From: Macrostomum lignano
Taxonomy: Eukaryota
Assembly: GCA_002269645.1 (NCBI GenBank)
Contig: NIVC01002362.1
Span: forward strand, 62,001-126,000
Length of the DNA: 64,000 bases
Reading direction: 5' to 3'
Shown: one piece after another, positions 17,801-48,510 of the stretch
Position numbering within the stretch: the stretch's first letter is position 1
Layout: each line of letters begins with the position of its first letter
Notes under the pieces: generated by a model
What the model was told of the DNA's origin: nothing
The model's input: the letters and a program-made list of their open reading frames with translations, nothing else
The model's database searches: none
Position numbers and translations under genes: made by a program

Positions 17801-20800
17801 ACACCGATGAGGAGCAGTACATCAAGCGGATGCTGCGAGACCAGCTGCCGGAGATGGAGTCGGTTCTGCTGAACGCGCTAGCCGATGCGGTGTGGAAGTC
17901 CCAGAAATTCATTCGAAAGCTGGAGAAACTGAGTACGCAATCAGCTTGCGAGATGTTCGCCGATGCTGCGAGTTCATCGCCTTCTTCGATTGGTTCTACG
18001 AACTGAGGCATGAGAAAAGCGATGTATATCGAAGTTTATCGACTCTGCCTCTGGTCATGTCTTTGTACGTGTGCTACTATGTGCGCATCCGGTCTGCAGA
18101 CAAGCGAACCGAATACGCTTGCGAAATTTTGTCTCTCCTGTCTGACAATGCTGAGGTAAGCTTGATTATCAGCTTTTATACGTTTCTGACCCCATCTGGT
18201 ACAGTTAGCTTCTCCTAAATTTACATAACCATGTAAATGCCCTTTTTGGTACCCGAGTTGTCAGTGAGCACTGGTGCATGTAGATTTATGGCTAATTACA
18301 CGCGTACATGTACATAATCTGCTGTGTCAATACAGAAAACAATACGCGAGGAGCAGGAAGACATTCTCAATCGAATGGAGCTGCCGGAAAATGTGGCTCA
18401 AAACGCGGCCCTGCTAGAGAACGTGTTTATCCTGCTGTGCTGCGTTTACAACAAAGTTCCGGTGTTCCTAGTTGGCAAGCCTGGCTGCTCCAAGAGTCTG
18501 GCCGTCTCTCTGCTCAGAAGCAATTTGCGAGGTCGGGACTCACGCGATCCGTTCTTCAAAGCTCTGCCAGCCCTGAGGTTTTTCTGCTACCAGGGCTCCG
18601 AGGCGTCCACTTCGGAGGGCATCTTCAAAGTGTTCCGCAGAGCCACGAAGAAAGCTGATGAGGATGCGGAAAAGGATGAGTATCGGTAAATTCCCTTGAC
18701 ATACGTGTACTGCTTAGCTCTCTCTGTTCTTTGATGGGGCGTAGCTTAGCGGTCTAGCCACCGATGTATGCGCCATTCGTCCAGTCTCGATTATGCATTC
18801 AAAATGCAGACACATTAATTTGGGGCTAAATTGGAATCTCGGCTTGGGTCTGCTCGTGCAATAAACACCGCCGCTGTACACTCCTTTGTGACTGTGTGCC
18901 TGTGCGTATGTCTGCGTACGTATCCTTGCGCTTGTGTGCGCTGCTCAGGGGAGTCGGCGGAACGGGCAGTGATGCCTCTCGCCGGCTGTGTGACAATGTC
19001 GCTTGAAGTGCGCCAGGGTGCACACAGCCCCTACCTCTAACTAAAAAACCCGTTTGAAAACTTCCTTTCCTTTAAAAACTAACTTCATTAAAAACACAAT
19101 TTGAAGGATGAAGATGCCATTACATCTGGTAGGCACGATGGTCTAGTATCACGTCCGGAATGATAGATGATTGAGCATCACGTCCGGAATGGATGTTAAT
19201 GATGGCATAGTGTTATATCCAGGATTCTTAATCAGTGACGGCTTAGTATTGCATCCGGGATGCTTAATTTATGATTATTGGTGAATGGCATCAGTGATTG
19301 ATCAATGATCAGTGATGGCCATGGCCTAGTATTACATCCGGGATGCTTCAGTACTGAATCATGATGAATGGCATCAGTGTTTGATCAATGATCAGTGACG
19401 AATTAGTATTGAATCCGGGATGCTTAATCAATCATCAGTGATGGTCTAGTGGCATTACATACGAGGTTTATGATGAGTTGTGACCTAACAATACATCCGA
19501 GATGCATTCTTACACTGGTTCACCTCCCTCTCCTCGCAGCTATGTAGTCCTGCTAGACGAGATCGGTCTAGCGGAGAAGTCGCGTCACAACCCGCTCAAA
19601 GTTCTGCACAGCCTCCTAGAGCCTGAAGAGTCGGAATTCACCTGCAAAGCTCGTGTTGCCGTACTGGGCTTGTCCAACTGGGCCCTGGACCCGGCCAAGA
19701 TGAACCGAGCTGTGCACATCTCCAGGCCGGATATGACAACCGAGGAGCTGCTCATCACAGGCAGTGCCATTGTTCTGCAGCAGGACAAGCAAGACGGTCA
19801 GGGCGAGGTTGGCGGTCGAATCGACAAAGAAGATATGCAAAAAATTGCTCAAGCGTGTCACGAATACTTCGACAGCCAAGTAGAAGAGGATTTCCACGGG
19901 CTCAGAGACTACTATTACCTGGTGAAGTTTCTCGCTAAAGAAAATGTTCGAATGCAGTTGAACAAGTTGGCTATACTCAGTCGCGGCTTGGTGAGGAACT
20001 TCTCCGGTCTGGAGCAGCCGTACTTTCTCGAACATTTTGACTTCGCTTACGAGGGACTGGAAAATGCTTACAAGGAAACACTTCGTCAACAAGACAAGGT
20101 TTGCATTTGAATTCTCTTGTTTTCCCAAATCAATTATCACGGATTTTTGTATGGGTCTTGCACATCTTATTCTTGCGCCAAGCTCATTCATTTAGGGCTT
20201 GTGCACTTAAAGGGGATGTGAACTTAAGAGTCAAAATGGAGCCCGAAACATTCGGTCCCGGTTTCTCTACGCCAATCCCTTCATTTGAAGCGTCAAATGC
20301 TAACGGGACGTGATGACCACGAAAAACGCTCTTTTATATGTTTGGTTGAAGAATAGGAGCGATAGTAATGTTACTTTATGCCCCCATTATGTTATCTATT
20401 AATGATGATTATGTTACCCCCCACACCAGCTCTCATTATGTTACCCTGCCTTGATGGAGGACATAATGAGACTGTGAGACTCCCTCACAACCATTCCCTC
20501 CCCCCCCCCGGGTTTTCGGCATATCAGGCGCAATTTTGCTTCAAATAAAAGGGGTTGGCGTAGAGAAATCGGGACCGAACCTCCACGTGCTTGAGGTTAG
20601 CCTGACATGCCTGACGGTTAGTAGAAGGTCAAGGCTGCTGTGCGGAAGCTTAACGTGATCCATGATCTACGCTCGTAACTCGCTAACTAACCGTCCCCTA
20701 GGTATCGGTGCTCATGGAGAGCCTAGAGGACAAGAGCGCGCGGCACTTGATGCTGATCACGGACACTGACCGGGATCTTGACCTGCTGGCCCATGTGCTT

Positions 20801-23800
20801 CAGCGGAAGGAGCGCCCGTTCCGAGTGCTTCACGGCAGCGCATACGATAGGGACCAGCTCAGCGAGCAGTTCGCGCTGAGAAAACTGCATGAAGTGATGA
20901 TGTGCATGGAGAACGGCATTGTTGTGCTGTTCAAGGACTTTGAACTCGTCTACGGCAGTTTGTACGACATGCTCAACCAAAACTACTCCGAGTATAACCA
21001 GTGTCGCTACTGCCGCGTTGCTATGGGAACGCAAGCTAACAAGAATTGCTCCGTTGATGACAAGTTCCGCTGCGTAGTGCTCGTGAGGGCGGACACTCTG
21101 GAGCGCGTGGACAGAGCCTTTCTCAACCGTTTCGAGAAGCAAACGTTCGGATTTGGCGACGTTCTGTCCGCAGAGCAGCGTGGCGCGGTTGAACAGCTTC
21201 GGGACAGTTTTGTTGCTAAGGCGACCAGGTGATTAGCAAATAATTAAGTCAAATAAAGTTGTTACCATTTTAGACGTTTTATCTTAAAACTGCTCTTAGT
21301 CTTAGCAACTCGTAATAGGGTTAGAGAGTCTTTTTTGACCTAGAGACAGCATAGCAACAAAGATACCACAGTTTAAGTTAACTGGTTTTGGCCTAGCTTG
21401 CTGAGTAACCTTGAAGCAACCTTGAAGCAACCTTGAAGCAGCTGAAGCAACCTTGCTGAGTATACTTATGGGGGCTGAGACTGGGGAGAAATCTAAAATT
21501 AAGGGTAGTGCTGCCACCAGCGTGGGAACCGTAGGATCCGCAATGAAGGGGTCTGTTTGGGCTCCACGCAAATAAATAACGCTAGAACAACTAGTCTCAG
21601 ATATTTCAATGTCCAAGTGACAGGACTCAATGGTAGCAATGGCCTGAGCGGCGCAGTCCTGGCACTGACAAATGTCCGCGCTTGAGCGTGTCTGAGTTTA
21701 GCTCTCAGAGGACCCCTAACTCCTGTTAACCTAATAGCTACGTCTCGCGCAGATGGGCGGCCTGCTCAGGCCAAGACCTGCTCAGGAGCGTGCTTTCTGC
21801 TTGAGCGCTGCAATGCTCTACCAAGACCTGCTCAGGAGCTTTGCTTCGCTGTTAACCGGCGCTAGAGCGCTTTCTCGGAGATATACTCAGCAACAGCTAA
21901 ACCCCCCCCCCCCAACTCACGCTGTCACACGGCCCAAAAGTTTTGTATGCCATCGGTGACTCAGAAATGTGTGAAGGCTGCCGCCGCCAGACGCGAGCGC
22001 AAAGTGCGGCATGGGGGATTTGGGGAGGGGGTGGCGCAACTCAACCCACTTAAAGACATTGCTTAACTTTTGTGCCCCTGTGACAGCGTGAGTTGGGGGG
22101 GGGTTTAGCTGTTGCTGAGTATAGCTCTCAACGAGTCTGACCAGCGGTCAAAACGGTTCTGAGGAAAAATTCAGACAAGCGGGCCTGCATTCGTTAATAT
22201 AGAACGCGGAGGGTGGAGCGTTTGGGCATTCCGTGGCTTGACCATGGAACTGCAGCCCGAAAAGTGCGGATAATGATGCACAACAGATATTGATTAAACA
22301 TGGGGGAAAGAGTAGCTTGTACGAAGCGCCGACAGTCGCCTCAAGCCACTAGTGACAAGAGCATGCCAAATTTGGGCTTGTGCGCACAAGGCTGCACGTG
22401 AGGGAGGGTTCAGCTCGGGACACGGGGTCCGCGAAACCCTCAGTCTAAAAATAGAATCACGCATGGGGAGAGGCTCGGACGCAGGAGGAACGAGAGAGCA
22501 GAAGGGGGAAGGGTCCAGAGAGCGCACGGGGGAGGAGTGCTGCTAACTAGACTTGCGTACACTGAGCGATCGTACGCGGCAGGCCAGGCAACAATAGCAA
22601 AGGCAAGCGCCAAATTTGGCGGCTTCCACTAACTAACCCTAGGCTAGGCAAAACTTCCTAATTTCCTATGTTAAAGATTGCGCCATATTGTGCAACTTCT
22701 GAGCGCCAAGGAAGGCTGCTTAGAGTGCATGGAGGCAGCAGAAAATTCCTATTCCAGATACTAGCAGTGGACAGCAGTGCCTAAGATGTGACTGCGGCCC
22801 TATGCTTGCAGCAGAAGGCTGCGGCCACATCAATAGCAACAAGGATTCCACAGTTTATGGTAACTGGTTTTGGCCTAGAGACAGCATAGCAACAATGATT
22901 CCACAGTTTATGTTTACTGGTTTTGGCCTAGAGACAGCATAGCAACAAGAATACCACAGTTTATGGTAACTGGCTTTGGCCTAGAGACAGCATAGCAACA
23001 ATGATTCCACAGTTTATGTTAACTGGTTTTGGCCTAGAGACAGCGTAGCAACAATGATTCCACAGTTTATGTTTACTGGTTTTGGCCTAGAGACAGCATA
23101 GCAACAAGGATACCACAGTTTATGGTAACTGGCTTTGGCCCAGAGACAGCATAGCAACAATGATTCCACAGTTTATGTTAACTGGTTTTGGCCTAGAGAC
23201 AGCGTAGCAACAAAGATTCCACAGTTTATGTTTACTGGTTTTGGCATAGAGACAGCTTAGCAACAAGGATTCCACAGTTTTTGTTAGTTGGTTTTTGGCC
23301 CAGAGATCGGATAGCAACGAAAATACCATAGCAACTGATTTTTCCCATCATGCATCGAGTTAAAACACTCTTACATTCTACTTTCAGTAGAAAGCTAAGC
23401 CTTTTCATTTCCAAAACCACCTAAAACTGCCAATCCGCAGCATAAGCGGCCTGGCATGGCAGGAGGAGCACGAAAAGCTTGAATTTGCCGCCCAAGAGAC
23501 TTTCTGCGGCTATCATCCTGAGCTGGCCGCCTCGCACCTGCTGGTTGGCGCCGACGACTCTGTGGAGGAGACGGCAAAGCGGCTGCCGCAGCACCTGCTG
23601 ACTCAGGCCTTCCCGGACGCTGTGCTGCGCCTGTCGCACAGTGAACTGCCTTCGGAGAGCCGCGAGGCCCTGCAGAGGCAATACTTCCAGGAGCTGTCGG
23701 ACACTTCCCTGGCTCGGCACGTGGCTGAACAGCTTGGCAGAGGCGGCGTCCGGGGGACGGTGGTGTACACCAGGACCCGGATGGAGGACACGGCCTGGAA

Positions 23801-26800
23801 GCTTCAGCTAGGCGTCGAGTGCTCCATCATCCGGCTGATTGACTTTATGGGAGAGGACGAGCTGAGGTGAGAGAGAGGGAGAGTCTTATGACCATCCGGA
23901 AAAACGCCTTTTGAGCGCTATGACCTTCTGGAAAATCGCGAAAATCTAGAAAATCACCCTCTGACCATCTAGAAAATCGCCTTCTGACCATCTAGAAAAT
24001 CGCCCTCTGACCATCTAGAAAATCACCCTCTGACCATCTAGAAAATCGCCTTCTGACCATCTAGAAAATCGCCCTCTGACCATCTAGAAAATCACCCTCT
24101 GACCATCTAGAAAATCGCTCACTGACCATCTAGAAAATCGCCTTCTGACCATCTAGAAAATCGCCCTCTGACCATCTAGAAAATCACCCTCTGACCATCT
24201 CGAAAATCGCCCTCTGACGATCCGAAGAATCGCCCTCTGACCATCTGGAGAATCGCCCTCTGACGATCCAAAGAATCGCCCTCTGACCATCTGGAAAATC
24301 GCCCTCTGACGATCCAAAGAATCGCCCTCTGACCATCTGGAGAATCGCCCTCTGACGATCCAAAGAATCGCCCTCTGACCATCTGGAGAATCGCCCTCTG
24401 ACGATCCAAAGAATCGCCCTCTGACCATCTGGAAAATCGCCCTCTGACGATCCAAAGAATCGCCCTCTGACCATCTGGAAAATCGCCCTCTGACCATCTG
24501 GAAAATCGCCCTCTGACTGCACCATTTTCCTCACCCAACCAATCGCGCAGAGACGAGCTGTCAGCGGCAATTCGCAACTCAGTTGGCGGCGTCGTCGCCC
24601 TGAGCTGTCGGCCGTCGGTGGACGCGGACTCGGCGCCTCAGCTCCGCTGGCTGCTGGAGTCGCTGATGGAGACCGCCAGCGCGGGCCCGACGGCTCTGCT
24701 GTGGATTTTCCACCTGGGCGGCGGCGGCGGCGCTTCGAGGGGCCGCCAGACCTGGCAGTGGTCGCCGCTGCTGCGGGACTGGCGCCTGCTCTGTCTGGAG
24801 TCGCTGGGCGCGGCTGACGACGGCTGCTCGGCCGACACTCTGCGGGATCTGGTGGGCAGCAGCTCCGCGAGGCAGCTGCTCACCGACCGCTGCCCGGCCG
24901 CGGTTCGAACCCGGGCCACTGCCGGGCTGCAGGTTAGTTGAGCAGAGTTTTAAGCGCGCTCGTCACTTTCCTTGCAATCTGTGTCACTTTCCTTGCAATG
25001 TGTGTCACTTTCCTAGCAATGTGTGTCACTTTCTTTGCAATGTGTGTCACTTTACTAGCAATCTGCTTCACTTTCGCAGCAATTTTTTGTCACTTTCCTA
25101 ACAATCTGTCACTTTCCTAGCAATGTGTGTCACTTTCCTAACAATCTGTCACTTTCCTAGCAATGTGTGCCCCTTTCCAAGCAATGGTGTCACTTTCCTA
25201 GGAATGTGTGTCACTTTCCTAGCAATCTGTGTCACTTTCCTAGCAATGTGTGCCACTTTCCTAGCAATGTGTGTCACTTTCTTTGCAATGTGTGTCACTT
25301 TCCTAGCAATGTGTGTCACTTTCTTTGCAATGTGTGTCACTTTCCTTGCAATGTGTGTCACTTTCCTAGCAATGTGTGTCACTTTCTTTGCAATGTGTGT
25401 CACTTTACTAGCAATCTGCTTCACTTTCGCAGCAATTTTTTGTCACTTTCCTAACAATCTGTCACTTTCCTAGCAATGTGTGCCCCTTTCCTAGCAATGG
25501 TGTCACTTTCCTAGGAATGTGTGTCACTTTCCTAGCAATGGTGTCACTTTCCTAGGAATGTGTGTCACTTTCCTAGCAATCTGTGTCACTTTCCTAGCAA
25601 TGTGTGCCACTTTCCTAGCAATGTGTGTCACTTTCTTTGCAATGTGTGTCACTTTCCTAGCAATGTGTGTCACTTTCTTTGCAATGTGTGTCACTTTCCT
25701 AGCAATGTGTGTCACTTTCTTTGCAATGTGTGTCACTTTCCTAGCAATGTGTGTCACTTTCTTTGCAATGTGTGTCACTTTCCTAGCAATGTGTGTCACT
25801 TTCCTAGCAATGTGTGTCACTTTCTTTGCAATGTGTGTCACTTTCCTAGCAGTGTGTGTCACTTTCTTTGCAATGTGTGCCACTTTCCTAGCAATGTGTG
25901 TCACTTTCTTTGCAATGTGTGTCACTTTCCTAGCAGTGTGTGTCACTTTCCTAGCAGTGTGTGTCACTTTACTAGCAATCTGCTTCACTTTCCCAGCAAT
26001 TTTTGTCACTTTCCTAGCAATGTGTGTCACTTTCCTAACAATGGTGTCACTTTCCTAACAATGGTGTCACTTTCCTAGCAATGTGTGTCACTTTCCTAAC
26101 AATGGTGTCACTTTCCTAACAATGGTGTCACTTTTCTAGCAATGTGTGTCACTTTCCTAGCAATCTGTGTCACTTTCCTAGCAATGTGTGTCACTTTCCT
26201 AGCAATCTGTGTCACTTTCCTAGAAATGTGTGTCACTTTCCTAGCAATCTGTGTCACTTTCCTAGCAATGTGTGTCATTTTCCTAGCAATCTGTGTCACT
26301 TTCCTAGAAATGTGTGTCACTTTCCTAGCAATCTGTGTCACTTTCCTAGCAATCTGTGTCACTTTCCTAGCAATCTGTGTCATTTTCCTAGCAATCTGTG
26401 TCACTTTCCTAGCAATCTGTGTCACTTTCCTAGCAATCTGTGTCATTTTCCTAGCAATCTGTGTCACTTTCCTAGAAATGTGTGTCACTTTCCTAGCAAT
26501 CTGTGTCACTTTCCTAGCAATCTGTGTCACTTTCTTTGCAATGTGTGTCACTTTCCTAGCAATCTGTGTCACTTTCCTAGCAATGTGTGTCACTTTCCCA
26601 ACAAAACATCACAACACGCAACGAGTCCCTCGCTCCCGAAACTGCAGGACGCTCTGCTCGAGGCCCTGGAGCCGGGGCCCAGGTTCGAAGCCGCCACCCG
26701 ACTGCTCAGATCTCGGCGTGGACTTGTCGAAGCTCTGATTGATGCTGCCATCAAGCGGGCTGCCAGAGAGGACTTTTGCGGCGACGACGATCTCGACGGC

Positions 26801-29800
26801 GAAGCTGCGGAGTTCTCGCCGGGACACTGGATGGTCGGCCTGGCCAGGGAGGCCGCCCAGCTGGCCAGATTCGCCACCCTCGCCGATTTCGCCATCGACC
26901 ACCTGGCCAGGCGCGTCAAGTCCAGCCTGCTGGACCTGCTGCGGCTCCTTCGCGATGCCCGCGCCTTCGACTGCGACGCTTTGGAACCGCGCACGCTAGA
27001 CTGCCTGGTGCGCGGCCTCGGCCACCTGGTGCAGTCGCGGCGGCTCCGCGTCGACCTCGGCGACATCGGCGTCGGCGGCAGCGGCGGTCCGCTTCGGTTC
27101 CCGCTGTCCGGCTTCGTGTTCGCTGATCTGAAGGCCGCGGCTTCAGCAGCTGCCAGCCCTGCCGGAGCTGCGGCTGTCGCTGGCGACGATGACGAAGATG
27201 CCGAAGAGCCGCAGGAGGCCGCGGCTGAGGCGGCCTGCGCGGCGCTGAAGCCGTGGCTGTCGGTGCTCGGACTGGCCGACGAAGACCAGCCGCCGGAGTC
27301 TGAAGCTGCCGACTTGCTAGCTAGAGATCTCATCGCCATGGCAACGGAGTCCGCCTGCGGCACCGACCTGTCGGAGCAGTTCAACAGCATCTTGACGGCA
27401 ATGACGCCGCTTGCCGCAGTCGCCGATGCCGGCACCCGCTGGGCTCCCGTGGTGTCGGCAATCGCCCTGGCTGTTCCCATGGCAACCGCCCTGCGTCTCT
27501 GGGCGATTCTGACGTCGGTCTCGCCGAAACTTTGCCCAGCAGACCTGCTCGACGGTGACGATGAGGACGGGCCGACCGAGCGTGGCGAGCTGGCGGAACG
27601 TCTGACTGGCTGCCTGCTGCCGAGCAGCGAGAACCTGCAGAAACTCGGCCTGGCCGACTCGCTGGCCGACTGGGACCGTCTGGCCGCCAGGGCTCTGCTT
27701 GTGCTTGCGGACTCGGAGTGCGCCCAGCTGGTGAGTGGACTGGATATTGTGCTCCGGGTGTTAGCTCTCAGGTGGGGAGCCCACACTACATGTATGTGCC
27801 ATGGGGTAAAAGTGTTTTAAGCTTTGGTGCTGTCAGTCTCGACCCTAGATATCGATCCCGACCCTAGATATCGATCCCGACCCTAGATATCGATCCCGAC
27901 ACTAGATATCGATCCCGACCCTAGATAACGATTCCGACCGTGGATATCGATCCCGACCCTAGATATCGATCCCGACCCTAGATAACGATTCCGACCGTGG
28001 ATATCGATCCCGACCCTAGATATAGATCCCGACCCTAGATATCGATTCCGACCGTGGATATCGATCCCGACCCTAGATATAGATCCTGACCCTAGATATC
28101 GATCCCGACTCTGGATATCGATCCCGACCCTGGATATCGATCTCGACCCTGGATATCGATCCCGACCCTGCATATCGATCTCGACCCTGGATATTGTCTT
28201 AACCCTAGACACCGGAGATCTGTGTGAATCTGAATGTAAAAATTCAATTCTAAAGATCTGAGACCCAGTATTCTGACCCGATCTTACCTATCTGACCAGT
28301 TGTGGCCTGGGATTGGTTGTTCGAAAAGCAAAACTAGGGCTTATATAGCTTGTCTTCTCCCACCCCCTGCCGCCCTCAGCCAATCACAGAGCAGCTCAGC
28401 ATGTGCCGCCTGTTCGCTGCCACGGTGGCTCTCCCCTGCAGCTTGCCGGCTGTCTGTCTGCACCGGGTCCAGAGCTTTCTATCAGAGCACACGGGCAACA
28501 CCGACTCTTTGTTCAGCGAGTCCGGAGTAGCCAGAATTGAGCAGCTTCTAATGGAGTCTCTGCCTGATCTGCAGGGTCTCCCGGTGCCCGAAGACCAGCT
28601 GGAACAGCAGCTGCAGTCGCTGTGGAGCCTCTACCTGCAGCAGGCTATCGAACGTGGCGCACTGACAATCGAGCTGGCGAAAGCTTTCCTGTTGAAACTG
28701 ACCGAAAAGCAGCTGCCAATCGGCTGCTTCTCGTTGCTATGGCGAGCCGTCCATAGCAACAACGGTCGCGGCGACAATGCAGCCGACGAAGACGCGTCCT
28801 GCTCGGCCGTCACCGCCTGGGTTGACGAGCAGTTGCGAATGCCGGCTGGTCGGGACCTGGCCCAGCTGGTGGCCGCGCACATTCCCGAGACCCTGCTGGC
28901 TGGCCTGCCACCGCTAGCAGCGCTGAACAGCATCGCCTGCGCGCAGACCCCGAGCCTGACAGACCTGCTCCGTCTGCACCGCTTCAAACTGACCGCCTCT
29001 CGGTCATACGTTCTCACCGAGAATCGACTCGAACTCAACGATGAAGGACAGAGGCTGGCTGATCAGCTACGAAGCGACCTAGGCAGCGGTTTCCGACCGG
29101 GCCATCCTTTGGTTGTCGCCTTCGCTCAGGCCGGCCTACGGCTGGCACCGCTGATGGACGTCCTGAGGTGCCTGACCTCTGCCGGCCTGCCGCTGAAGGC
29201 CACCGACAGCTCCTGGCAGCCGCTGCCTTTCCTGCCGCTGCCTGACTCAGCCGACTCCTCAGAGACAGTCCACGCCGCCGTGTGCTCGGCTTTGAACGAC
29301 CTCCTTCAAGCTCCTGACAGTCCCGAAGCTTTGAAACGACTGCTCAACTGTTCGAGCTCGTCCGTCAATGCCATAATTGCCGCCTGGATTGAGCTGGTGT
29401 TCTTGAGAAAACTGGACCGACAGCCGGTTGCGTCAGAAGAGCAGCGAGTTGGCAGTCTGCTGTACAGTCGGCTTGTTGACTTGTTGATTGATGAAGAATC
29501 GAACCCAGCAGCCTCCGTGGAGTCCGATCGCATCATGCTGGACTGGCTGCTGCTGGGAAGTCGCCTGGTTGAAGATGAGCCCAGGCTAGAGGCGACACCG
29601 GACAACGGAGCCGACTGGCTCGGCCGCTCCATGGTTGCCGCGGTGTCGGCTGGAGCAGCTCAACTGCTGGGCTGCCAAAGACGCTTCGGCAGCGCCGCCA
29701 CCTTGGCCGCCGGCGGCAAAGTCGGCGAATTTGCTAAACAGTTGAAGCTGCTGCTGGACGCCAGGCTGCCGCTGACTTCGGGAGTTCATCCGCTCCGCTG

Positions 29801-32800
29801 CGCCCGCTGTCTGGCCGTCACGGTTGTCGCCGTCAAGAATGCCTCCTCGTTCTCTTCCTCCAGCAGCCGCTGCCCGCTCTGCGGCTCTTCCGGTCCGCTT
29901 GAAGTCGTCATGATGCCGTCGGATTTGGCGACCGACTGCCCGCGACTGCCGACTTCGCTACTCCGCTGGGCCGCGAGCGCCTCATCCGTGCTGCTCTGCC
30001 TGAGCTCCGGAAGCGTCTCGGCCGCCGTCGACCTGTGCGCCGAGCTCGGACACCCCGGCCGAGTCTCCGAGTTCATTGGCAAGGCCTTCTCGGAGATGCG
30101 CGCAGCGCTGGCCATGGACTGGGACGATCCGGCTTGGATCTGCCAGCAGCTGGTTGGCGACTTGGCGCACCAGTTCGCCTCGCAGCCGTGCCCCCAGTTT
30201 GTTGGCTCGCTGCTCCACTCGGCCGCTCTGCTGCTGCTCTGTCGTCGAGCGCGCGTCGCCAAGTTCAAAGCCGATCGGCTGGCTGAGCGAGGCTTGACGG
30301 CTGCTCAGGCCGGCGATCCTCGCGTTCTGGCCGCTCAACTCGACGCCGCCCTGCCGCCTGAGCAGCCGTCGGTGCCGGAGAAACTGCTGCGGCCTGCTGT
30401 TGAAGTGGACTGGTCGACCGCCTGTCACGTCCGCACCCTGTGGCTGGGCCGCCAGCTGAGCCCGGCAACCAGTTCCTCAGCGGCCGGCAGGCTGGATCTC
30501 ACACTAGCGGTGCTGGCGCATCAAGACGCGCTGATTAAAATGGCGCACCTCAGCAAAGTGCTGGATTGGCACAGGAGGTGCGTGTCAGTGCTTGACGGCC
30601 AGGTGAGCAGAGCCGGCTGGGAGCGGCTCACCGTTGCCGAGGTGATTAAGCAAGATGAAGCAGCGGCTGCGCTGTGGCCAGCTGCTCAAACTGGTCTGCG
30701 CCAACTCGGAATGCCTGACTGCGCATCAGCTGACAGCCACCTGCGTGAGACTGTGCTCACCGAGGGCTCAAAACTAGCTGACTTGGCTACTCAACTCTGC
30801 CCACTGGCGAACAGCTTCCTACTGGCTGCCTCTGCTGTGGCTCTGCAGGGCGGCGGACTCGGCCACCTGCTCACCGGCCAGTGCTCAGTCACCCTGCCTG
30901 CCCGGTCGGTCACCGCTGCCAGATGCGGCTTGGTCAGCCTCGAGCAGGCCGAGCTGGACCGGCTGGCTGCTCAGTTCTCCGGTCCGAGCGATCCGCGGCT
31001 GTCTGAGGCCAGCGAACACCTGGACTGGGCTCTGCTTGACGCGGCCCTGGGTCACCTGCTCACAGTCGGTCGCAGCTGGGCCCTGCCGCCAGCCAGCTGG
31101 AGGCCGCGGTTCAGCGACCACCAGCAGCGACAGCCGGTGGAGCTCATGACCCGATTCAGACATCGGGCTGGCGAGGGCATCGAAGTGCTGAGCACAGCTG
31201 AAGTGGCCAGGCTGAAAGAGCTGCACGAGCAGGATCACACCTATGCCAGGTGCGAATCCTGAGTTTTTGAATCTGACAATTCACATCCCTGATGCCGTAG
31301 TGATCCTGCCGTAGTCACCTGTGCCAGCGGCCCAGGCTCGATTCCAAGTGCAGTCGCATTCATTTGAGGCTAAACTGGAATCTCGGCTTGGCTCTGCAAC
31401 CCACAAGGCACAGTGAAGTGTACATGCCTAGGGATAAATAAAGTTAGGGCCGCTGCCTGTGCGTATGACTGCGTACGTATCCGCGCGCTTGTGTGCCTGC
31501 TCAGGGGAGTCGGTGGAATGGGCAGTAATGCCTCTCGCCGGTTGTGTGACAATGTCACTTAAAGTGCGCCAGGGTGCACAAAACCCCTGCCTCTTAAAAT
31601 AGGATTTTAAAGTGTCGTGGACCAATGCTAAGAAACCTAAAAATGGCCCTTTAGAAACCCAATTACGGGCCCTAGAAGGCATATAAGCTCCTAAAAGACC
31701 TACTTTGAATCACTTAAATAACCAGAGACCTAACCTCGAACCCCCACAACCACTCCAAGTGACCTATATAACTGTCTCAGACAGACCAAAAATTTGAATC
31801 CTCTTAAATGATGAAGCTTCAAGCCAGCTTCCCCAACCAACCGCCATCAATGCAGGAAGCTGACAGACTGCTCAATCAGCATCCTTCGCTACCTGAGCGA
31901 TCAGAATTGGCCAGAAGCTGTCCTTCAACGATCCATTCGTGAGTTCTCCAACGACTGTCAGAGTGGCAGCCCGTTGATGAGCTCCTCTGCGTCGTTGTCA
32001 TGGCAACTGCCCGAGGCTCTGCCGGAGCCGGACGCGGGCGGTCTCACTGTTGCCAAGCTGCTCAGCCTGACTCAGCAGGCCCTGTGTCTGCAGTTCCAGC
32101 AGGTCAGGCACGAGCTCGCCAGGAGGCCCTACAGAACCGCCATCAATGCTGACGTGCTGGACGGCCTGGTGCACCAATTCGGAGCTCCGCAGGCTCTGAG
32201 ACCTGCGCTGGCTGCCTGCCAGAGCGCCTGCGTGTTGCACCTGCTGGAGGAGCAGCACGATACCGGTCTGAGGCTGCGCGAACTGATGCAGCCTTCGGGA
32301 GTCTGGCCAGAGACTGGCCTGACTGTCCGGGCCCAGCTGCTTGAGTCTGTGCCCGATGAAGCCACCGTTATGTACCTGTTTCCCCTGTGCGAGCGGCTCC
32401 TTCAGCTGGTGAGTTGATCTTAGTGCGAATGTTTAATCCAGGCTGTTTGTGTTTATGACGATGAGAGAAGAGGTGAGAGGCGAGAGAGAAGATAAGAGGA
32501 TAGATCAGATTAGATATGAAAGGAGAGAGAGAAGAGAGCTAAGAAGAGACACAAACCTTGCGCTGGCCGAGTTGCTGTTGTGAAGTTTCGGAGGCCCCGA
32601 GGGTCGGAGAAACACAGTCATGCGCGCAGGCTCACACTCACACAGGAGTTTACAGCCGCCCTAACTTTATGTACACTTCATGTTGCATTGCACGAGCAGA
32701 GCCAAGCCGAGATTCCAATTTAGCCTCAGATCAATGTGACTGCACTTGGAATCGAGCCCGGGCCGCTGGCACATCAGAGCCTGCGCTTGACCCACTCATC

Positions 32801-32916: not shown

Positions 32917-33149
32917 CGGCTTTGTCAAATTTCACTACTAAGTTTGCTTAAACTCGTTGACCGTTTCCTCCACCTGCCGGAGCTATTAACTTTTTTCTTT
33001 GTCATTCGTGCGTCGATTTGCAAAAAAAAATTAACAATGAAAATTATATTCGCCATAAAAATTAAAAACATTTTTAACAATAGAAAATCTACATTGCTAA
33101 CGATCAACAAATTGTAACAAATTCTATTAGAAATTTTATACTGCAACCA

Positions 33150-34123
33150 AGTGTCTGTAATGACAGTCAGGTCCCCCACAACCAGTGTCTGTAATGACAG
33201 TCAGGTCCCACACAACCAGTGTCTGTAATGACAGTCAGGTCCCCCACAACCAGTGTCTCAGTGTCTGTAATGACAGTCAGGTCCCCCACAACCAGTGTCT
33301 GTAATGACAGTCAGGTCCCTCACAACCAGTGTCTGTAATGACAGTCAGGTCCCCCACAACCAGTGTCTGTAATGACAGTCAGGTCCCCCACAACCAGTGT
33401 CTGTAATGACAGTCAGGTCCCCCACAACCAGTGTCTGTAATGACAGTCAGGTCCCCCACAACCAGTGTTTGTAATGACAGTCAGGTCCCCCACAACCAGT
33501 GTTTGTAATGACAGTCAGGTCCCCCACAACCAGTGTCTGTAATGACAGTCAGGTCCCCCACAACCAGTGTCTGTAATGACAGTCAGGTCCCCCACAACCA
33601 GTGTTTGTAATGACAGTCAGGTCCCCCACAACCAGTGTTTGTAATGACAGTCAGGTCCCCCACAACCAGTGTCTGTAATGACAGTCAGGTCCCCCGCAAC
33701 CAGTGTCTGTAATGACAGTCAGGTCCCCCACAACCAGTGTCTGTAATGACAGTCAGGTCCCCCACAACCAGTGTCTGTAATGACAGTCAGGTCACCCACA
33801 ACCAGTGTCTGTAATGACAGTCAGGTCCCCCACAACCAGTGTCTGTAATGACAGTCAGGTCCCCCACAACCAGTGTCTGTAATGACAGTCAGGTCCCCCA
33901 CAACCAGTGTCTGTAATGACAGTCAGGTCCCCCACAACCAGTGTCTGTAATGACAGTCAGGTCCCCCACAACCAGTGTCTGTAATGACAGTCAGGTCACC
34001 CACAACCAGTGTCTGTAATGACAGTCAGGTCCCCCACAACCAGTGTCTGTAATGACAGTCAGGTCCCCCACAACCAGTGTCTGTAATGACAGTCAGGTCC
34101 CCCACAACCAGTGTTTGTAATGA
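33150..34123. repeat. Minisatellite, 34-bp unit, about 28 copies
   Basis: accagtgtctgtaatgacagtcaggtcccccaca repeated, with very high unit identity. Confidence 0.97.
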
Positions 34124-35658: not shown

Positions 35659-38369
35659 ATGGAAACTGAGACGCTAGCCGCCACCACCCAGGCCGCCGCT
35701 GTTGATAACCTGAGCGCCGGCTTCTTCTACGCCCGGAGCGCTTCGATCTTCGTGTCCTTGCTGGGCCTGGGCATGAGCAGCTTCTCCCTGTCCGTGCTGC
35801 TCAGGAAGTACCTGGCCAGGCGGGACGTCTTCGATGTCGGCCTCATCATTCTGGAGGCCTGCCAGGTGGCCTACTGCCTATTGTGCTCGGCCACGTTCTG
35901 CCTGGACCTGACTGTCCAGCTGCAGGGCACCTACAACAAGGAGCCGTTCAAGACCATCTACGAGGTGAGGGGCAGCTTGCTGGTAGTTCAACAATTGAAT
36001 CGTAGCTCGTATGCTGAGGTAACTAAGCAATGTAGGGCGAATCAGTGGTGATCTACAGAGAAGGGGCAAACCCTAAGGCTCAAGTGTGTACATGACTAAC
36101 GATTAGAAAGTCAGGGCCGCCGTGCCACCCTGCGGGAGTATCTGATCGTACAATGCTCAAAAGGGGTCAGCGGCGACTGCTTACCTTGCCTTGATTGCAG
36201 CAAGCGCTTGAAGTCGGAGGTCTACTTTAGATCTCCAATAAGTTAACAGCTAAATTCACTTGAAGCAGATTGTCATGACAACATGAAGAAAGGCTTATAG
36301 CTATCGATTTCAATGTTCCTTATCTTTGCTCGGCATCCCTGCTCTAACCGTTGCGACGAATTTGAAAAGTTAAGCAAACTAGAAAGTTCTAAAGATACTT
36401 TGTTACAATGCGGAAGAAAAATCACCTGATTTATCAAAAAAACCATATTTTTGCATTCCCTCCAGTTTGTGCTGCCCGGGCTTTTTTGGCACAACAACTC
36501 CGCAGCTCACATGAAGCTCCAAGCACCTCCCATTTCTTGTACGAGCTCCACTTTTCGAGAGTTGGGTTTCGCAAAATACGTGTTTCCTGAACCTTGGATT
36601 CTGTGGGTCCCGGCTCTTCCCGCGCCCGACGCCCCCTTGGCCCCTGACGCACGGAAATGTTACAAATGTTTGGAAATCTGGAGGCGTTCTGTTTTCTGAG
36701 AAACGAGCTTCCATGAGTCACGGAGATGGGCGAGGCGCAACTAGGACATTTCATTCCGGTAGACCGCCATTCCATTCTTGTTTGTTTATAGCGGGTTCGT
36801 AGCCTAGCGGTTAAGTAGAGCGTCGGACTCACGACGGAAAGATCGGGGGTTCCATTTTCGAACCACTCCGAACTATTTGTCTCCTTAAGCAAGACACTCA
36901 ACTCTGCATTGCTTCAGCTCACCCAGCTGTAAAATGGGTGTCTGCATTAGCTGGGGTAATTGAGGGTGTTTGTGACGACCTTCCCCCCTTAGTCCATGGA
37001 CTGAACAGCCGTACGCAGCCTTCAGATGCGCTGCGCAATAGCTGCGGCTAAGCTGTCGGTTGCACATCTGCCCAATATTGGGTAGGTGTACAATATAATA
37101 CTTCGAAGCATAATGCTGGCAAGTTGTGGACGGCTGACCTACGGTTTCAAACCAGTTATCGACTCTAATGATTTTTAAGAACACAAGACTGCAGACAGAT
37201 GCTAACACTGCTCTCATCAGCTCAGATTTAGTCACACCAGTCAATTTAGAAAACACGTTCTCAACTGAATGGGCGTTCCTCCACTCCTGCAGGCTAACCT
37301 TAACAAGCCTCGATCCGTGCCCGGGCAATGAACCCAACTGTAACCCTGTCACAACCCCAACCAGGTGATGTTTGCCCTAGTTCTGGTCGCCCTGCTCAAC
37401 CGCAACCAGTGGACGATGTGCATGACCCTGTTCAGGACCGCCGCGACCACGAACCCCATCGCTTTCCGGCACTGCTTCACCAAGCGAATGCAGCTGATGG
37501 TGTTTGGCGTCGTGTTCGTCATTTCGCTGCTCATCGGCGGTCTCTACACGCCCGGCCTGATGGAGCTGCTGGACAGGCAGGCCCTGCTCATGACGAGCCG
37601 CGTGTTCCAGTCCTACATTCCCGTGCCAGTCATTCTCATCTGCTCCTTCATCATGGCCTACAAATTCTGCGGGGCCAAGGAGCAGCTGGCCAACAGCGAG
37701 TCAGTTGTTGCGAGTCGGGGCAGCAGCACGACCGGCGTCGGGGGCGGCAGCGCGGCTGCTGACGGCGGAGGCGGCAGCCTGATCGGCAGCAGCCGGGGCA
37801 ACAGCAGCGGCGTCACCAACCTTCGTCGCAACTCTCGAGTGGCCACAGCTATCGTGCTGTGCCTGTCCATCTCGTTCCACGTGTTGGAGACCCCGGGAGC
37901 CGTTCTGATCATGCTGAACCTGTCCCTGACCAGCTCCGTGGACTGGTTCTACGCCGTGAACGACATTTTGGTGTCGCTGGACAGCGCTGTGCACTTCCTC
38001 ATCTTCTTCTGTCTGAGCCGGAATTTCCGTCGCACAGCCGGGCAGGCCTGCGGAATGCAGCGCAGCCGACGGCGTCGACGTAGACAACGATGCAGAGGCA
38101 TCGAAGGCGGCAACGGCAGCGGCGACATCGCGGCGGCAGTTCTGGCCGCCGAGGCTGGCCAGTTCGGGCGCAGCAGCCGCCTGGCTGGCCGGGGCAACCG
38201 CGGCCCCCGCCGCAGCTGCATGAAGGGCGGCGGCGTCAACTACCAGAGCAGCCGCGGCGTCGCCACCTCCATCGCTGTGGTCAGCCATGCCGACGAGATT
38301 CTCGGCGCCGAGCCGCCAGCCGAAGGCACCCAGCCGATCGAAATGAAGTCGCTGCCTCGTCCCGGATAG
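35659..38369 (+). CDS. Class A (rhodopsin-like) 7TM orphan GPCR, peptide-receptor-like, join(35659..35964,37365..38369), 436 aa
   Basis: Seven hydrophobic segments. TM3 end MCMTLFRTAATTNP, TM6 AIVLCLSISFHVLETPG, TM7/H8 NDILVSLDSAVHFLIFFCLSRNFRR. Phase-0 intron gag|gtgagg ... ccaaccag|gtg. Confidence 0.8.
36791..37100 (+). mobile_element. SINE family A copy in the GPCR intron (duplicated at about 42111-42421)
   Basis: gcgggttcgtagcctagcggtt..gtcggactcacgac..ccttaagcaagacactcaactctgcattgcttcagctcacccagctgtaaaatggg; homologous to 4402-4728. Confidence 0.8.
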
Positions 38370-40979: not shown

Positions 40980-43689
40980 ATGGAAACTGAGACGCTAGCC
41001 GCCACCACCCAGGCCGCCGCTGTTGATAACCTGAGCGCCGGCTTCTTCTACGCCCGGAGCGCTTCGATCTTCGTGTCCTTGCTGGGCCTGGGCATGAGCA
41101 GCTTCTCCCTGTCCGTGCTGCTCAGGAAGTACCTGGCCAGGCGGGACGTCTTCGATGTCGGCCTCATCATTCTGGAGGCCTGCCAGGTGGCCTACTGCCT
41201 ATTGTGCTCGGCCACGTTCTGCCTGGACCTGACTGTCCAGCTGCAGGGCACCTACAACAAGGAGCCGTTCAAGACCATCTACGAGGTGAGGGGCAGCTTG
41301 CTGGTAGTTCAACAATTGAATCGTAGCTCGTATGCTGAGGTAACTAAGCAATGTAGGGCGAATCAGTGGTGATCTACAGAGAAGGGGCAAACCCTAAGGC
41401 TCAAGTGTGTACATGACTAACGATTAGAAAGTCAGGGCCGCCGTGCCACCCTGCGGGAGTATCTGATCGTACAATGCTCAAAAGGGGTCAGCGGCGACTG
41501 CTTACCTTGCCTTGATTGCAGCAAGCGCTTGAAGTCGGAGGTCTACTTTAGATCTCCAATAAGTTAACAGCTAAATTCACTTGAAGCAGATTGTCATGAC
41601 AACATGAAGAAAGGCTTATAGCTATCGATTTCAATGTTCCTTATCTTTGCTCGGCATCCCTGCTCTAACCGTTGCGACGAATTTGAAAAGTTAAGCAAAC
41701 TAGAAAGTTCTAAAGATACTTTGTTACAATGCGGAAGAAAAATCACCTGATTTATCAAAAAAACCATATTTTTGCATTCCCTCCAGTTTGTGCTGCCCGG
41801 GCTTTTTTGGCACAACAACTCCGCAGCTCACATGAAGCTCCAAGCACCTCCCATTTCTTGTACGAGCTCCACTTTTCGAGAGTTGGGTTTCGCAAAATAC
41901 GTGTTTCCTGAACCTTGGATTCTGTGGGTCCCGGCTCTTCCCGCGCCCGACGCCCCCTTGGCCCCTGACGCACGGAAATGTTACAAATGTTTGGAAATCT
42001 GGAGGCGTTCTGTTTTCTGAGAAACGAGCTTCCATGAGTCACGGAGATGGGCGAGGCGCAACTAGGACATTTCATTCCGGTAGACCGCCATTCCATTCTT
42101 GTTTGTTTATAGCGGGTTCGTAGCCTAGCGGTTAAGTAGAGCGTCGGACTCACGACGGAAAGATCGGGGGTTCCATTTTCGAACCACTCCGAACTATTTG
42201 TCTCCTTAAGCAAGACACTCAACTCTGCATTGCTTCAGCTCACCCAGCTGTAAAATGGGTGTCTGCATTAGCTGGGGTAATTGAGGGTGTTTGTGACGAC
42301 CTTCCCCCCTTAGTCCATGGACTGAACAGCCGTACGCAGCCTTCAGATGCGCTGCGCAATAGCTGCGGCTAAGCTGTCGGTTGCACATCTGCCCAATATT
42401 GGGTAGGTGTACAATATAATACTTCGAAGCATAATGCTGGCAAGTTGTGGACGGCTGACCTACGGTTTCAAACCAGTTATCGACTCTAATGATTTTTAAG
42501 AACACAAGACTGCAGACAGATGCTAACACTGCTCTCATCAGCTCAGATTTAGTCACACCAGTCAATTTAGAAAACACGTTCTCAACTGAATGGGCGTTCC
42601 TCCACTCCTGCAGGCTAACCTTAACAAGCCTCGATCCGTGCCCGGGCAATGAACCCAACTGTAACCCTGTCACAACCCCAACCAGGTGATGTTTGCCCTA
42701 GTTCTGGTCGCCCTGCTCAACCGCAACCAGTGGACGATGTGCATGACCCTGTTCAGGACCGCCGCGACCACGAACCCCATCGCTTTCCGGCACTGCTTCA
42801 CCAAGCGAATGCAGCTGATGGTGTTTGGCGTCGTGTTCGTCATTTCGCTGCTCATCGGCGGTCTCTACACGCCCGGCCTGATGGAGCTGCTGGACAGGCA
42901 GGCCCTGCTCATGACGAGCCGCGTGTTCCAGTCCTACATTCCCGTGCCAGTCATTCTCATCTGCTCCTTCATCATGGCCTACAAATTCTGCGGGGCCAAG
43001 GAGCAGCTGGCCAACAGCGAGTCAGTTGTTGCGAGTCGGGGCAGCAGCACGACCGGCGTCGGGGCGGCAGCGCGGCTGCTGACGGCGGAGGCGGCAGCCT
43101 GATCGGCAGCAGCCGGGGCAACAGCAGCGGCGTCACCAACCTTCGTCGCAACTCTCGAGTGGCCACAGCTATCGTGCTGTGCCTGTCCATCTCGTTCCAC
43201 GTGTTGGAGACCCCGGGAGCCGTTCTGATCATGCTGAACCTGTCCCTGACCAGCTCCGTGGACTGGTTCTACGCCGTGAACGACATTTTGGTGTCGCTGG
43301 ACAGCGCTGTGCACTTCCTCATCTTCTTCTGTCTGAGCCGGAATTTCCGTCGCACAGCCGGGCAGGCCTGCGGAATGCAGCGCAGCCGACGGCGTCGACG
43401 TAGACAACGATGCAGAGGCATCGAAGGCGGCAACGGCAGCGGCGACATCGCGGCGGCAGTTCTGGCCGCCGAGGCTGGCCAGTTCGGGCGCAGCAGCCGC
43501 CTGGCTGGCCGGGGCAACCGCGGCCCCCGCCGCAGCTGCATGAAGGGCGGCGGCGTCAACTACCAGAGCAGCCGCGGCGTCGCCACCTCCATCGCTGTGG
43601 TCAGCCATGCCGACGAGATTCTCGGCGCCGAGCCGCCAGCCGAAGGCACCCAGCCGATCGAAATGAAGTCGCTGCCTCGTCCCGGATAG
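40980..43689 (+). pseudogene. Second copy of the GPCR, join(40980..41285,42686..43689), with a 1-nt deletion in a G run near 43060. As written it truncates after TM5 (stop at 43102).
   Basis: ggcgtcgggggcggc in copy 1 versus ggcgtcggggcggc in copy 2; otherwise identical by eye. Confidence 0.7.
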
Positions 43690-47524: not shown

Positions 47525-48510
47525 AGTCACACCTGTTAGAGACACTAGAGAGTCACCTGTTAGAGACACTAGTTAGTCACCTGTTAGAGACACTAGAGAG
47601 TCCCTGTTAGAGACACTAGAGAGTCACCTATTAGAGACAATAGAGAGTCACCTGTTAGAGACACTAGAGAGTCGCCTGTTAGAGACACTAGAGAGTCGCC
47701 TGTTAGAGACACTAGAGAGTCGCCTGTTAGAGACACTAGAGAGTCACCTGTTAGAGACACTAGAGAGTCACCTGTTAGAGACACTAGAGAGTCACCTGTT
47801 AGAGACACTAGAGAGTCACCTGTTAGAGACACTAGAGAGTCACCTGTTAGAGACACTAGAGAGTCACCTGTAAGAGACACTAGAGAGTCACCTGTTAGAG
47901 ACACTAGAGAGTCACCTGTTAGAGACACTAGAGAGTCACCTGTAAGAGACACTAGAGAGTCACCTGTTAGAGACACTAGAGAGTCACCTGTTAGAGACAC
48001 TAGAGAGTCACCTGTAAGAGACACTAGAGAGTCACCTGTTAGAGACACTAGAGAGTCACCTGTTAGAGACACTAGAGAGTCACCTGTTAGAGACACTAGA
48101 GAGTCACCTGTTAGAGACAGTAGAGAGTCCCCTGTTAGAGACACTAGAGAGTCACCTGTTAGAGACACTAGAGAGTCACCTGTTAGAGACACTAGAGAGT
48201 CACCTGTTAGAGACACTAGAGAGTCACCTGTTAGAGACACTAGAGAGTCGCCTGTTAGAGACACTAGAGAGTCACCTGTTAGAGACACTAGAGAGTCATC
48301 TGTAAGAGACACTAGAGAGTCACCTGTAAGAGACACTAGAGAGTCACCTGTAAGAGACACTAGAGAGTCACCTGTTAGAGACTCACAGAGTCACCTGTTA
48401 GACACTATAGAGACCGGTTAGACTCTACAGAGTCACCTGTTATACACTTTAGAGACCTGTTAGAGACACTAGAGAGTCACCTGTTAGAGACACTACAGAG
48501 TCAACCTGTT
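47525..48510. repeat. Minisatellite, 24-bp unit, about 40 copies
   Basis: acctgttagagacactagagagtc repeated. Confidence 0.97.

Follow-up and report, generated by a model that had tools for sequence, protein, structure and literature searches.

Can a protein of the RNF213 family keep its AAA+ motor and do without ubiquitin ligase activity? The question is raised by a giant RNF213-like gene of the flatworm Macrostomum lignano, which lies in a 64,000-nucleotide stretch of contig NIVC01002362.1 (assembly GCA_002269645.1, positions 62,001–126,000 of the forward strand; hereafter the window). To our knowledge, RNF213 is the only ligase known to ubiquitylate bacterial lipopolysaccharide, and this reaction proceeds through the RZ finger of RNF213, not through its RING domain. 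An earlier interpretation of the window from its letters (the sequence-only reading) had proposed an RNF213-like protein with an intact AAA+ motor whose two ubiquitin ligase (E3) modules, the RING and the RZ finger, are both disabled. Our analysis leans, at a little better than even chance, towards a RING-less RNF213-family AAA+ protein that combines an intact AAA ring with a minimal finger at the RZ position and likely acts as a scaffold, sensor or non-catalytic partner, not as a transthiolating E3.

AAA+ core of the M. lignano protein

The gene product consists of approximately 4,400 residues and terminates at the stop codon at 32415–32417. It is 95–100% identical, exon by exon in a tblastn comparison, to the M. 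lignano protein A0A1I8JA77 of UniProt (hereafter P0096). Residues 1044–1892 of P0096 match the mouse and human RNF213 structures with an E value of 4e-109 in a phmmer search of the PDB, in which the AAA2 region is aligned too. One exon of the window gene, 19502–20107, matches RNF213 by itself with an E value of 4.5e-19. The P-loop of AAA2 and the Walker A and B motifs of AAA3 and AAA4 all have aligned counterparts in RNF213 (Table 1). The exons that encode AAA3 are joined in frame from position 16724 (followed by GTAAGC) to position 17377 (preceded by cag), and the junction generates FLSK followed by VHEASLRVLNFHAGTT, in agreement with the mouse sequence. The alignment shows a predicted dynein-like AAA+ ring of the RNF213 type with intact Walker A and B motifs in AAA3 and AAA4, the two catalytically active modules in RNF213. 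The intact AAA+ motor of the sequence-only reading is thus borne out, at the sequence level, by the PDB match and the conserved Walker motifs. The similarity to RNF213 stops at approximately P0096 residue 1912 (approximately human residue 3316), and the remaining ∼1650 residues are unalignable by sequence.

Four-cysteine finger at the RZ position

The human RZ finger spans RNF213 residues 4502–4537 (WYTCPNGHPCSVGECGRPMEQSICIDCHAPIGGIDH). Metal is bound by C4505, H4509, C4525 and C4528, the nucleophile is predicted to be C4516 and the general base H4537, and ubiquitylation is lost in the C4516S and H4509A mutants (PMC11549300). In the window protein, a CARC-x20-CPLC finger with a poly-serine loop is located 670 residues before the stop codon, compared with 702 residues from the C-terminus for the human RZ finger. 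The finger contains exactly four cysteines. Neither cysteine nor histidine is found between the two CxxC pairs, no histidine occurs within 20 residues downstream, and the residue at position +9 after the last cysteine, which is the general-base histidine in human RNF213, is valine. The whole protein contains only three CxxC motifs.

The sequence-only reading had described this motif at 29799–29882, with no cysteine between the pairs and no nearby downstream histidine, and each of these points was confirmed. Its spacings were approximately right and required correction, from about 455 to 465 residues between the LSMCRLFAATVALPCSLPAVCLHRVQSF segment (see below) and the finger and from about 690 to 670 residues between the finger and the C-terminus. 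Of its two claims about the E3 modules, that of a finger at the RZ position without an intervening cysteine held, and that of a disabled RING failed.

Absence of a RING

The proposed pseudo-RING segment LSMCRLFAATVALPCSLPAVCLHRVQSF had been read as the start of the RNF213 RING with about three of the eight zinc ligands retained. The human RING and RZ sequences quoted for that comparison are correct, and the segment is present in the frame of a real exon, although it ends at 28478, not at 28480. The resemblance itself is at chance level. In an ungapped comparison with the human RING 28-mer, the segment obtains a BLOSUM62 score of 1, which ranks 26th among 4311 positions in the same protein. Cysteine or histidine occupies two of the six ligand positions that the 28-mer covers, and 132 positions of the protein do equally well.

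Profile searches gave a consistent picture. Window positions 28380–28619 have no Pfam match at E ≤ 10, with the corresponding half of the human RING detected as zf-C3HC4 (E = 5e-7) in a control, and P0096 contains no RING family in Pfam. The profile search that had been suggested as a check reveals neither a RING nor an RZ finger in the gene, and the human controls work. Across all six frames, the window contains RING and RZ patterns only within a 21-bp minisatellite; a hidden exon supplying a canonical RING or RZ finger, which had been named as evidence that would overturn the proposal, was found for neither domain. The pattern matches at 24973–25922 were rejected as translation of this intronic minisatellite (24962–26598, 78 copies, CHFPSNV repeats).

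RING-less relatives of the M. lignano protein

The AAA region has 95 relatives at E ≤ 1e-10, with 30–60% identity, from Mytilus, Pinctada, Glomeromycota, protists and metagenomes. Ten loci of these relatives were retrieved (L001–L010). Four of them (L003, L004, L009 and L010) display long, nearly uninterrupted frames over the full post-AAA region and were scanned there with Pfam. The gene strand of L001–L010 contains no RING pattern, and Pfam detects no RING in the post-AAA products of these four loci. Rhizophagus L001 lacks a RING both in the pattern scan and in its precomputed record. Because L001, L003, L004, L009 and L010 are all devoid of a RING, there is no evidence for a RING disabled in place, as the sequence-only reading had supposed, and the likeliest interpretation is that this whole branch of the family has no RING, rather than that a RING decayed in place.

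L003, L004, L009 and L010 each carry a cysteine-rich finger at a distance from the C-terminus comparable to those of the window and human fingers (Table 1). That of L010 can be recognised as an RZ finger and retains the putative GxCG nucleophile motif. BLASTP aligns it with the human RZ finger with 13 identities in 28 residues (E = 1e-6), placing GKCG opposite GECG and CPSCH opposite CIDCH. The sole Pfam match of this finger is the RZ family PF20173 (E = 4.8e-5), at 23.3 bits and hence under the curated 27-bit cut-off. The L003 finger also matches PF20173 (E = 6.8e-4). The first knuckle is CxxC in L003, L004 and L010, in contrast to C-x3-H in human RNF213. At least one extra cysteine is observed in the finger of each relative, whereas the window finger has none to spare under every alignment. 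The histidine located nine residues past the last cysteine in human RNF213 is found in none of the non-vertebrate relatives.

Three further loci retain less of the finger or have it interrupted. Rhizophagus L001 has the C-terminal domain and no finger, Mytilus L002 retains the first half of the finger only, and the Pinctada L005 finger (CGYRFISFDRKCAKCG) spans a frameshift. The two bivalve loci, L002 (Mytilus edulis, 10001–16681) and L005 (Pinctada imbricata, 10001–17173), consist of overlapping chains of open reading frames (ORFs) with shifting frames, which could reflect pseudogenes, short introns or assembly indels. Between its AAA region and its finger, L010 (9504–13754 of ENA ERZ24794615 k141_134132) contains both a ubiquitin-like domain (PF00240, E = 1.3e-8) and a short ORF with a precomputed match to a protein kinase, a combination that the other loci did not show. 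A search for more family members with the human RZ finger as the query returned two tiny fragments only, and metagenome scans with the C-terminal regions of L004 and L003 returned no relatives.

The window finger is connected to these relatives through its downstream domain. In a BLASTP comparison of the L004 and window finger regions (E = 3e-4), the two CPLC motifs open an alignment of 96 residues, at whose end LAMNCRD is paired with LAMDWDD. A second, collinear BLASTP segment (E = 1e-4) pairs window residues +249 to +437 from the finger with L004 residues +253 to +461. Conserved blocks of the C-terminal domain are common to the window protein and the relatives (Table 1). A profile of five relatives, built without the window sequence, hits HLSKVLDWH...LTVAEVI and QLCPLANSFL in the window protein with 8.4 bits, compared with a maximum of 3.1 bits in 1000 shuffles. 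The comparison shows homology between the predicted domain downstream of the window finger and those of the relatives. Moreover, the CARC knuckle of the window finger is similar to CLRC in L003 and CMTC in L004.

The window finger is placed in the RZ slot by a chain of similarities: the human RZ finger resembles the L010 finger, the C-terminal domain of L010 resembles those of L004 and L003, and these in turn resemble that of the window protein. The homology is positional because the window finger's own sequence is too degenerate for profile recognition. Together, these comparisons indicate that the CxxC-x20-CxxC motif of the window is a stripped-down RZ-type finger without a candidate nucleophile. 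They also suggest a series of fingers from canonical to minimal, with L010 followed by L004, L003 and L009 and then by the window finger.

Predicted function of the M. lignano protein

In the favoured interpretation, the four cysteines of the finger would continue to coordinate zinc as a small structural knuckle, and the equivalents of the ubiquitin-accepting cysteine (C4516) and the general-base histidine (H4537) would be gone. Because these equivalents are gone, the finger site would be unable to accept ubiquitin from a ubiquitin-conjugating enzyme (E2). The protein would then most likely act as a scaffold or sensor driven by ATP, or else accompany other ligases as a non-catalytic partner. 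The M. lignano gene thus probably belongs to an immune E3 family without encoding a ligase itself, and we infer the loss of ligase activity from the residues missing in its finger. An immune role may be proposed by analogy only. An expansion of RNF213-like genes has been reported in symbiotic bivalves (PMC9993606), and a literature search found no paper linking Macrostomum and RNF213.

Several observations weigh against this interpretation. The RZ homology of the window finger rests on its position, collinearity and cysteine pattern. Window positions 29700–30029 do not match PF20173 at E ≤ 10, with an E value of 8e-18 for the human RZ finger as a control, and the sole Pfam match of the finger is zf-Sec23_Sec24, a generic four-cysteine finger, with an E value of 0.099. 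A hidden Markov model (HMM) of the fingers of four relatives has the window finger as its top match in the window protein, with a score within the shuffle range. A search of the PDB produced no RNF213 match for the window exon, the L004 C-terminal product or a nine-sequence family profile. Single-sequence AlphaFold2 models of the C-terminal 1143 residues and of 120 residues around the finger reached predicted local distance difference test (pLDDT) values of 40.7 and 39.1, respectively, and are unusable. The automatic finger alignments conflict on which cysteine of the relatives corresponds to C4516, and the alignment of the loop is ambiguous; because of this disagreement, retention of the nucleophile is claimed for L010 alone among the relatives. 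L003, L004, L009 and L010 come from metagenome assemblies. Finally, another cysteine elsewhere in the protein could serve as the nucleophile.

Alternative explanations

In a more far-reaching and unlikely reading, an old RING-less branch of the RNF213 family extends over flatworms, bivalves, Glomeromycota and eukaryotes sampled in metagenomes and carries a CxxC-type variant of the RZ finger. The Macrostomum protein would then be either a true pseudo-ligase that retains its ATPase and regulates or scaffolds catalytically active paralogues, or an enzyme that transfers ubiquitin via a nucleophile outside the finger.

It is rather doubtful that the protein is a still-active ubiquitin ligase, with its nucleophile outside the four-cysteine finger or with one finger cysteine acting in catalysis and not as a zinc ligand. 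A weak candidate for an outside nucleophile is the cysteine located 19 residues past the window finger (29937–29939), for which a cysteine at a similar offset is found in L004 and L009; this conservation was judged by eye, and the cysteine is missing in L010 and Pinctada. The family may also have a different catalytic geometry because the non-vertebrate relatives have no histidine nine residues past the last cysteine. An RZ-family protein is able to carry a second, unrelated ligase domain, as exemplified by ZNFX1 (bioRxiv 10.1101/2025.10.14.682297), yet Pfam detects no RING, U-box, HECT, RBR or Miz ligase domain anywhere in the window protein.

We attach equally little credence to a redundant copy from a recent genome duplication in M. 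lignano, whose C-terminal half would be drifting under relaxed selection to a loss of function. The poly-serine loop of the finger, the strong enrichment of the 3' exons in GC and in glycine, alanine, proline and arginine relative to the 5' exons, and the lack of any homologue detected by HMMER beyond the same gene (P0096) would fit such drift. The finger exon also shares 94.9% identity with P0096, compared with 98.6–100% in the majority of the exons, and one patch of it is read in other frames; errors of assembly may, however, account for these differences. Decay is opposed by the 957-codon exon, which would be stop-free by chance with a probability of ∼1e-11 at its base composition, and by the splice sites, all of which are canonical where checked. 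Moreover, the finger and the reading frame are retained in both copies (the window gene and P0096), and the blocks of the C-terminal domain are still conserved.

That the CxxC-x20-CxxC motif is a coincidence, or a zinc ribbon unrelated to the RZ finger, is improbable. Such a motif, moderately improbable as a chance event, does arise in approximately 3% of shuffles (CxxC-x(8-30)-CxxC in 140 of 5000 whole-protein shuffles, or 2.8%, and in 70 of 5000 when the C-terminal 1143 residues are shuffled), and the absence of an RZ profile match and the zf-Sec23_Sec24 assignment described above point in the same direction. However, the motif occupies the same place as the fingers of the relatives, in a collinear and statistically supported alignment that starts at an identical CPLC, and its CARC knuckle matches those of L003 and L004.

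Least credible of all, and very improbable, is that RING and RZ were both once present and both disabled in place, with 28395–28478 as a RING remnant: the segment lies at a distance from the finger that is near the human RING–RZ spacing of 508 residues and is the most Cys/His-rich 60-residue stretch of the region (six Cys/His), but it scores at chance level against the human RING, has no Pfam RING match at E ≤ 10, and is paralleled in the relatives, which have 5–8 Cys/His in some 60-residue window of the same region and yet no RING.

Gene structure and neighbouring features

Table 1. Positions of the features of the RNF213-like gene in the window and fingers of its relatives
Feature	Position	Strand	Description
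RNF213-like giant gene	10201–32417	+	At least 12 exons; long ORFs, tblastn of P0096 and GT-AG junctions; the 5' end may be upstream of 10201
AAA2 P-loop SERAGCGKTELV	15495–15530	+	Aligned to mouse RNF213 SERAGVGKSLYV
AAA3 Walker A GETGCGKTS	16677–16703	+	Aligned to GETGCGKT of RNF213 and midasin
AAA3 Walker B VWLFLDEINT	17524–17553	+	Aligned to ILFFDEAN of mouse RNF213
AAA4 Walker A VGKPGCSKSLA	18471–18503	+	Aligned to VGKPGSSKSLA of RNF213
AAA4 Walker B VVLLDEIGLAE	19544–19576	+	Aligned to VVVLDEVGLAE of RNF213
GC-rich, alanine-rich exon upstream of the motif exon	26648–27730	+	Ends with ...ADSECAQL at the donor (27730, followed by GTGAGT); no Pfam family
Intron	27731–28379	+	Contains a 19-bp minisatellite (27840–28194); no Cys-rich exon
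957-codon exon	28380–31249	+	Carries both motifs (LSMCRLFAATVALPCSLPAVCLHRVQSF and CARC-x20-CPLC); acceptor ccctcag followed by CCAATC, donor AG followed by GTGCGA
LSMCRLFAATVALPCSLPAVCLHRVQSF, proposed pseudo-RING	28395–28478	+	Ordinary exon-start sequence, five codons into the exon; chance-level score
Four-cysteine finger CARC-x20-CPLC, CARCLAVTVVAVKNASSFSSSSSRCPLC	29799–29882	+	RZ-equivalent position; poly-serine loop
Cysteine 19 residues past the finger (SDLATDCPRL)	29937–29939	+	Similar offset in L004 (SDENRPCRKL) and L009, by eye; weak candidate for an alternative nucleophile
Conserved C-terminal-domain blocks HLSKVLDWHRRCV, LTVAEVI and QLCPLANSFL	30546–30821	+	Common to the window protein and relatives
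Last exon	31856–32417	+	Consensus donor-like CTG followed by GTGAGT at 32408/32409; stop directly after
L010 finger YTCSSCGFVCMMGKCGSTMQVSKCPSCH			863 residues to the C-terminus
L004 finger CMTCKCGYRLITCNKYRDDMCCPLC			692 residues to the C-terminus
L003 finger CLRCGCGFVFIIDNNRQSTMRRSCSRC			About 768 residues to the C-terminus
L009 finger CSCGLLVWISGNCATCSCTCG			748 residues to the C-terminus

The exon 28380–31249 is free of stop codons in a sequence of 64% GC. When 1.84 billion representatives were searched exhaustively with HMMER, P0096 was the sole relative identified for the 960-residue product of this exon. This product has no relative in a word-indexed protein collection, no Pfam family and no PDB match at E ≤ 1. 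The GC content of the exons rises along the gene from 0.44 (10201–14480) to 0.72 (24549–24932) and is 0.64 in 28380–31249. Along the exons, the GC content at the third codon position (GC3) increases from 0.45 to 0.86 and that at the second position (GC2) from 0.34 to 0.61, and the introns are constant at 0.42–0.50. The combined content of glycine, alanine, proline and arginine climbs in parallel along the exons from 17% to 39%. This compositional trend probably accounts for the failure of sequence searches to recognise the C-terminal half.

The UniProt model A0A1I8JA77 omits parts of real exons. At its 3' end, it splices from position 32408 (followed by GTGAGT) into a neighbouring seven-transmembrane (7TM) receptor gene and fuses both genes. 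The entry is labelled "CARD domain-containing protein" by UniProt; neither P0096 nor the large 5' exons of the window gene match a CARD or death-fold family of Pfam at E ≤ 10. Approximately 30 codons of the window gene (QFVGSLLHSAALLLLCRRARVAKFKAD, 30090–30200) are read by P0096 in the other two frames (RRLAAPLGRSAAALSVERASP), after which P0096 returns to the same frame. This patch reflects either several indels between the copies or assembly and gene-model errors.

The introns of the gene and the sequence after them contain minisatellites at 22833–23318 (period 53 bp), 23944–24517 (period 23 bp), 24962–26598 (period 21 bp), 27840–28194 (period 19 bp) and 33144–33997 (period 34 bp). Just downstream of the gene, a 7TM receptor gene of two exons (Pfam 7TM_GPCR_Srw, E ∼1e-7) is present as a tandem duplicate at 35659–38366 and 40980–43686. 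On the minus strand, the ORF at 47593–48357 encodes a SAM_3 domain (E = 1.7e-12) and is unrelated to the RNF213-like gene.

Comparison with known systems and significance

The window protein resembles vertebrate RNF213 (mysterin; PDB 6TAX, 7OIK and 8S24) in its similar size, in an AAA+ core that is alignable over ∼850 residues and includes the Walker A and B motifs of AAA3 and AAA4, and in a zinc-finger motif ∼700 residues from the C-terminus. It differs in its ∼1650 post-AAA residues, which have no detectable sequence similarity to vertebrate RNF213. Vertebrate RNF213 contains a RING and a C-x3-H...CxxC finger, whereas the window gene has no RING, a CxxC...CxxC finger and no equivalent of C4516 or H4537. 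With the RZ finger of PF20173, as found in RNF213 and ZNFX1, the window finger shares the position in the protein, the two knuckles and a loop of ∼20 residues, but it has no profile match, nucleophile cysteine, GxCG motif or downstream histidine.

The window gene also resembles the RING-less RNF213-like genes (L003, L004, L009 and L010, Mytilus L002, Pinctada L005 and Rhizophagus L001), whose AAA regions are 43–60% identical to that of the window gene. They share with it a homologous C-terminal domain, a finger in the same place and the lack of a RING. Their fingers contain a spare cysteine and a CG motif (GKCG in L010), in contrast to the four cysteines only of the window finger.

C. elegans ZNFX-1 is an RZ-family protein without an RZ domain and is thought to stay active via a Miz domain (bioRxiv 10.1101/2025.10.14.682297). 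It provides a precedent for an invertebrate RZ-family member that lost RZ catalysis and kept its ATPase (bioRxiv 10.1101/2025.10.14.682297). ZNFX-1 is, however, a superfamily 1 (SF1) helicase and belongs to another ATPase family, and no second ligase domain is detectable in the window gene.

Until activity and expression have been measured, these findings will be of limited practical value. The finger series from L010 to the window protein could guide mutagenesis, and the RING-less members would also help to separate the structural from the catalytic parts of the RZ finger. Natural RING-less members of the RNF213 family, one of which would also be without the RZ-finger nucleophile while its ATPase is intact, may offer a comparative handle on the function of the AAA+ machine itself.

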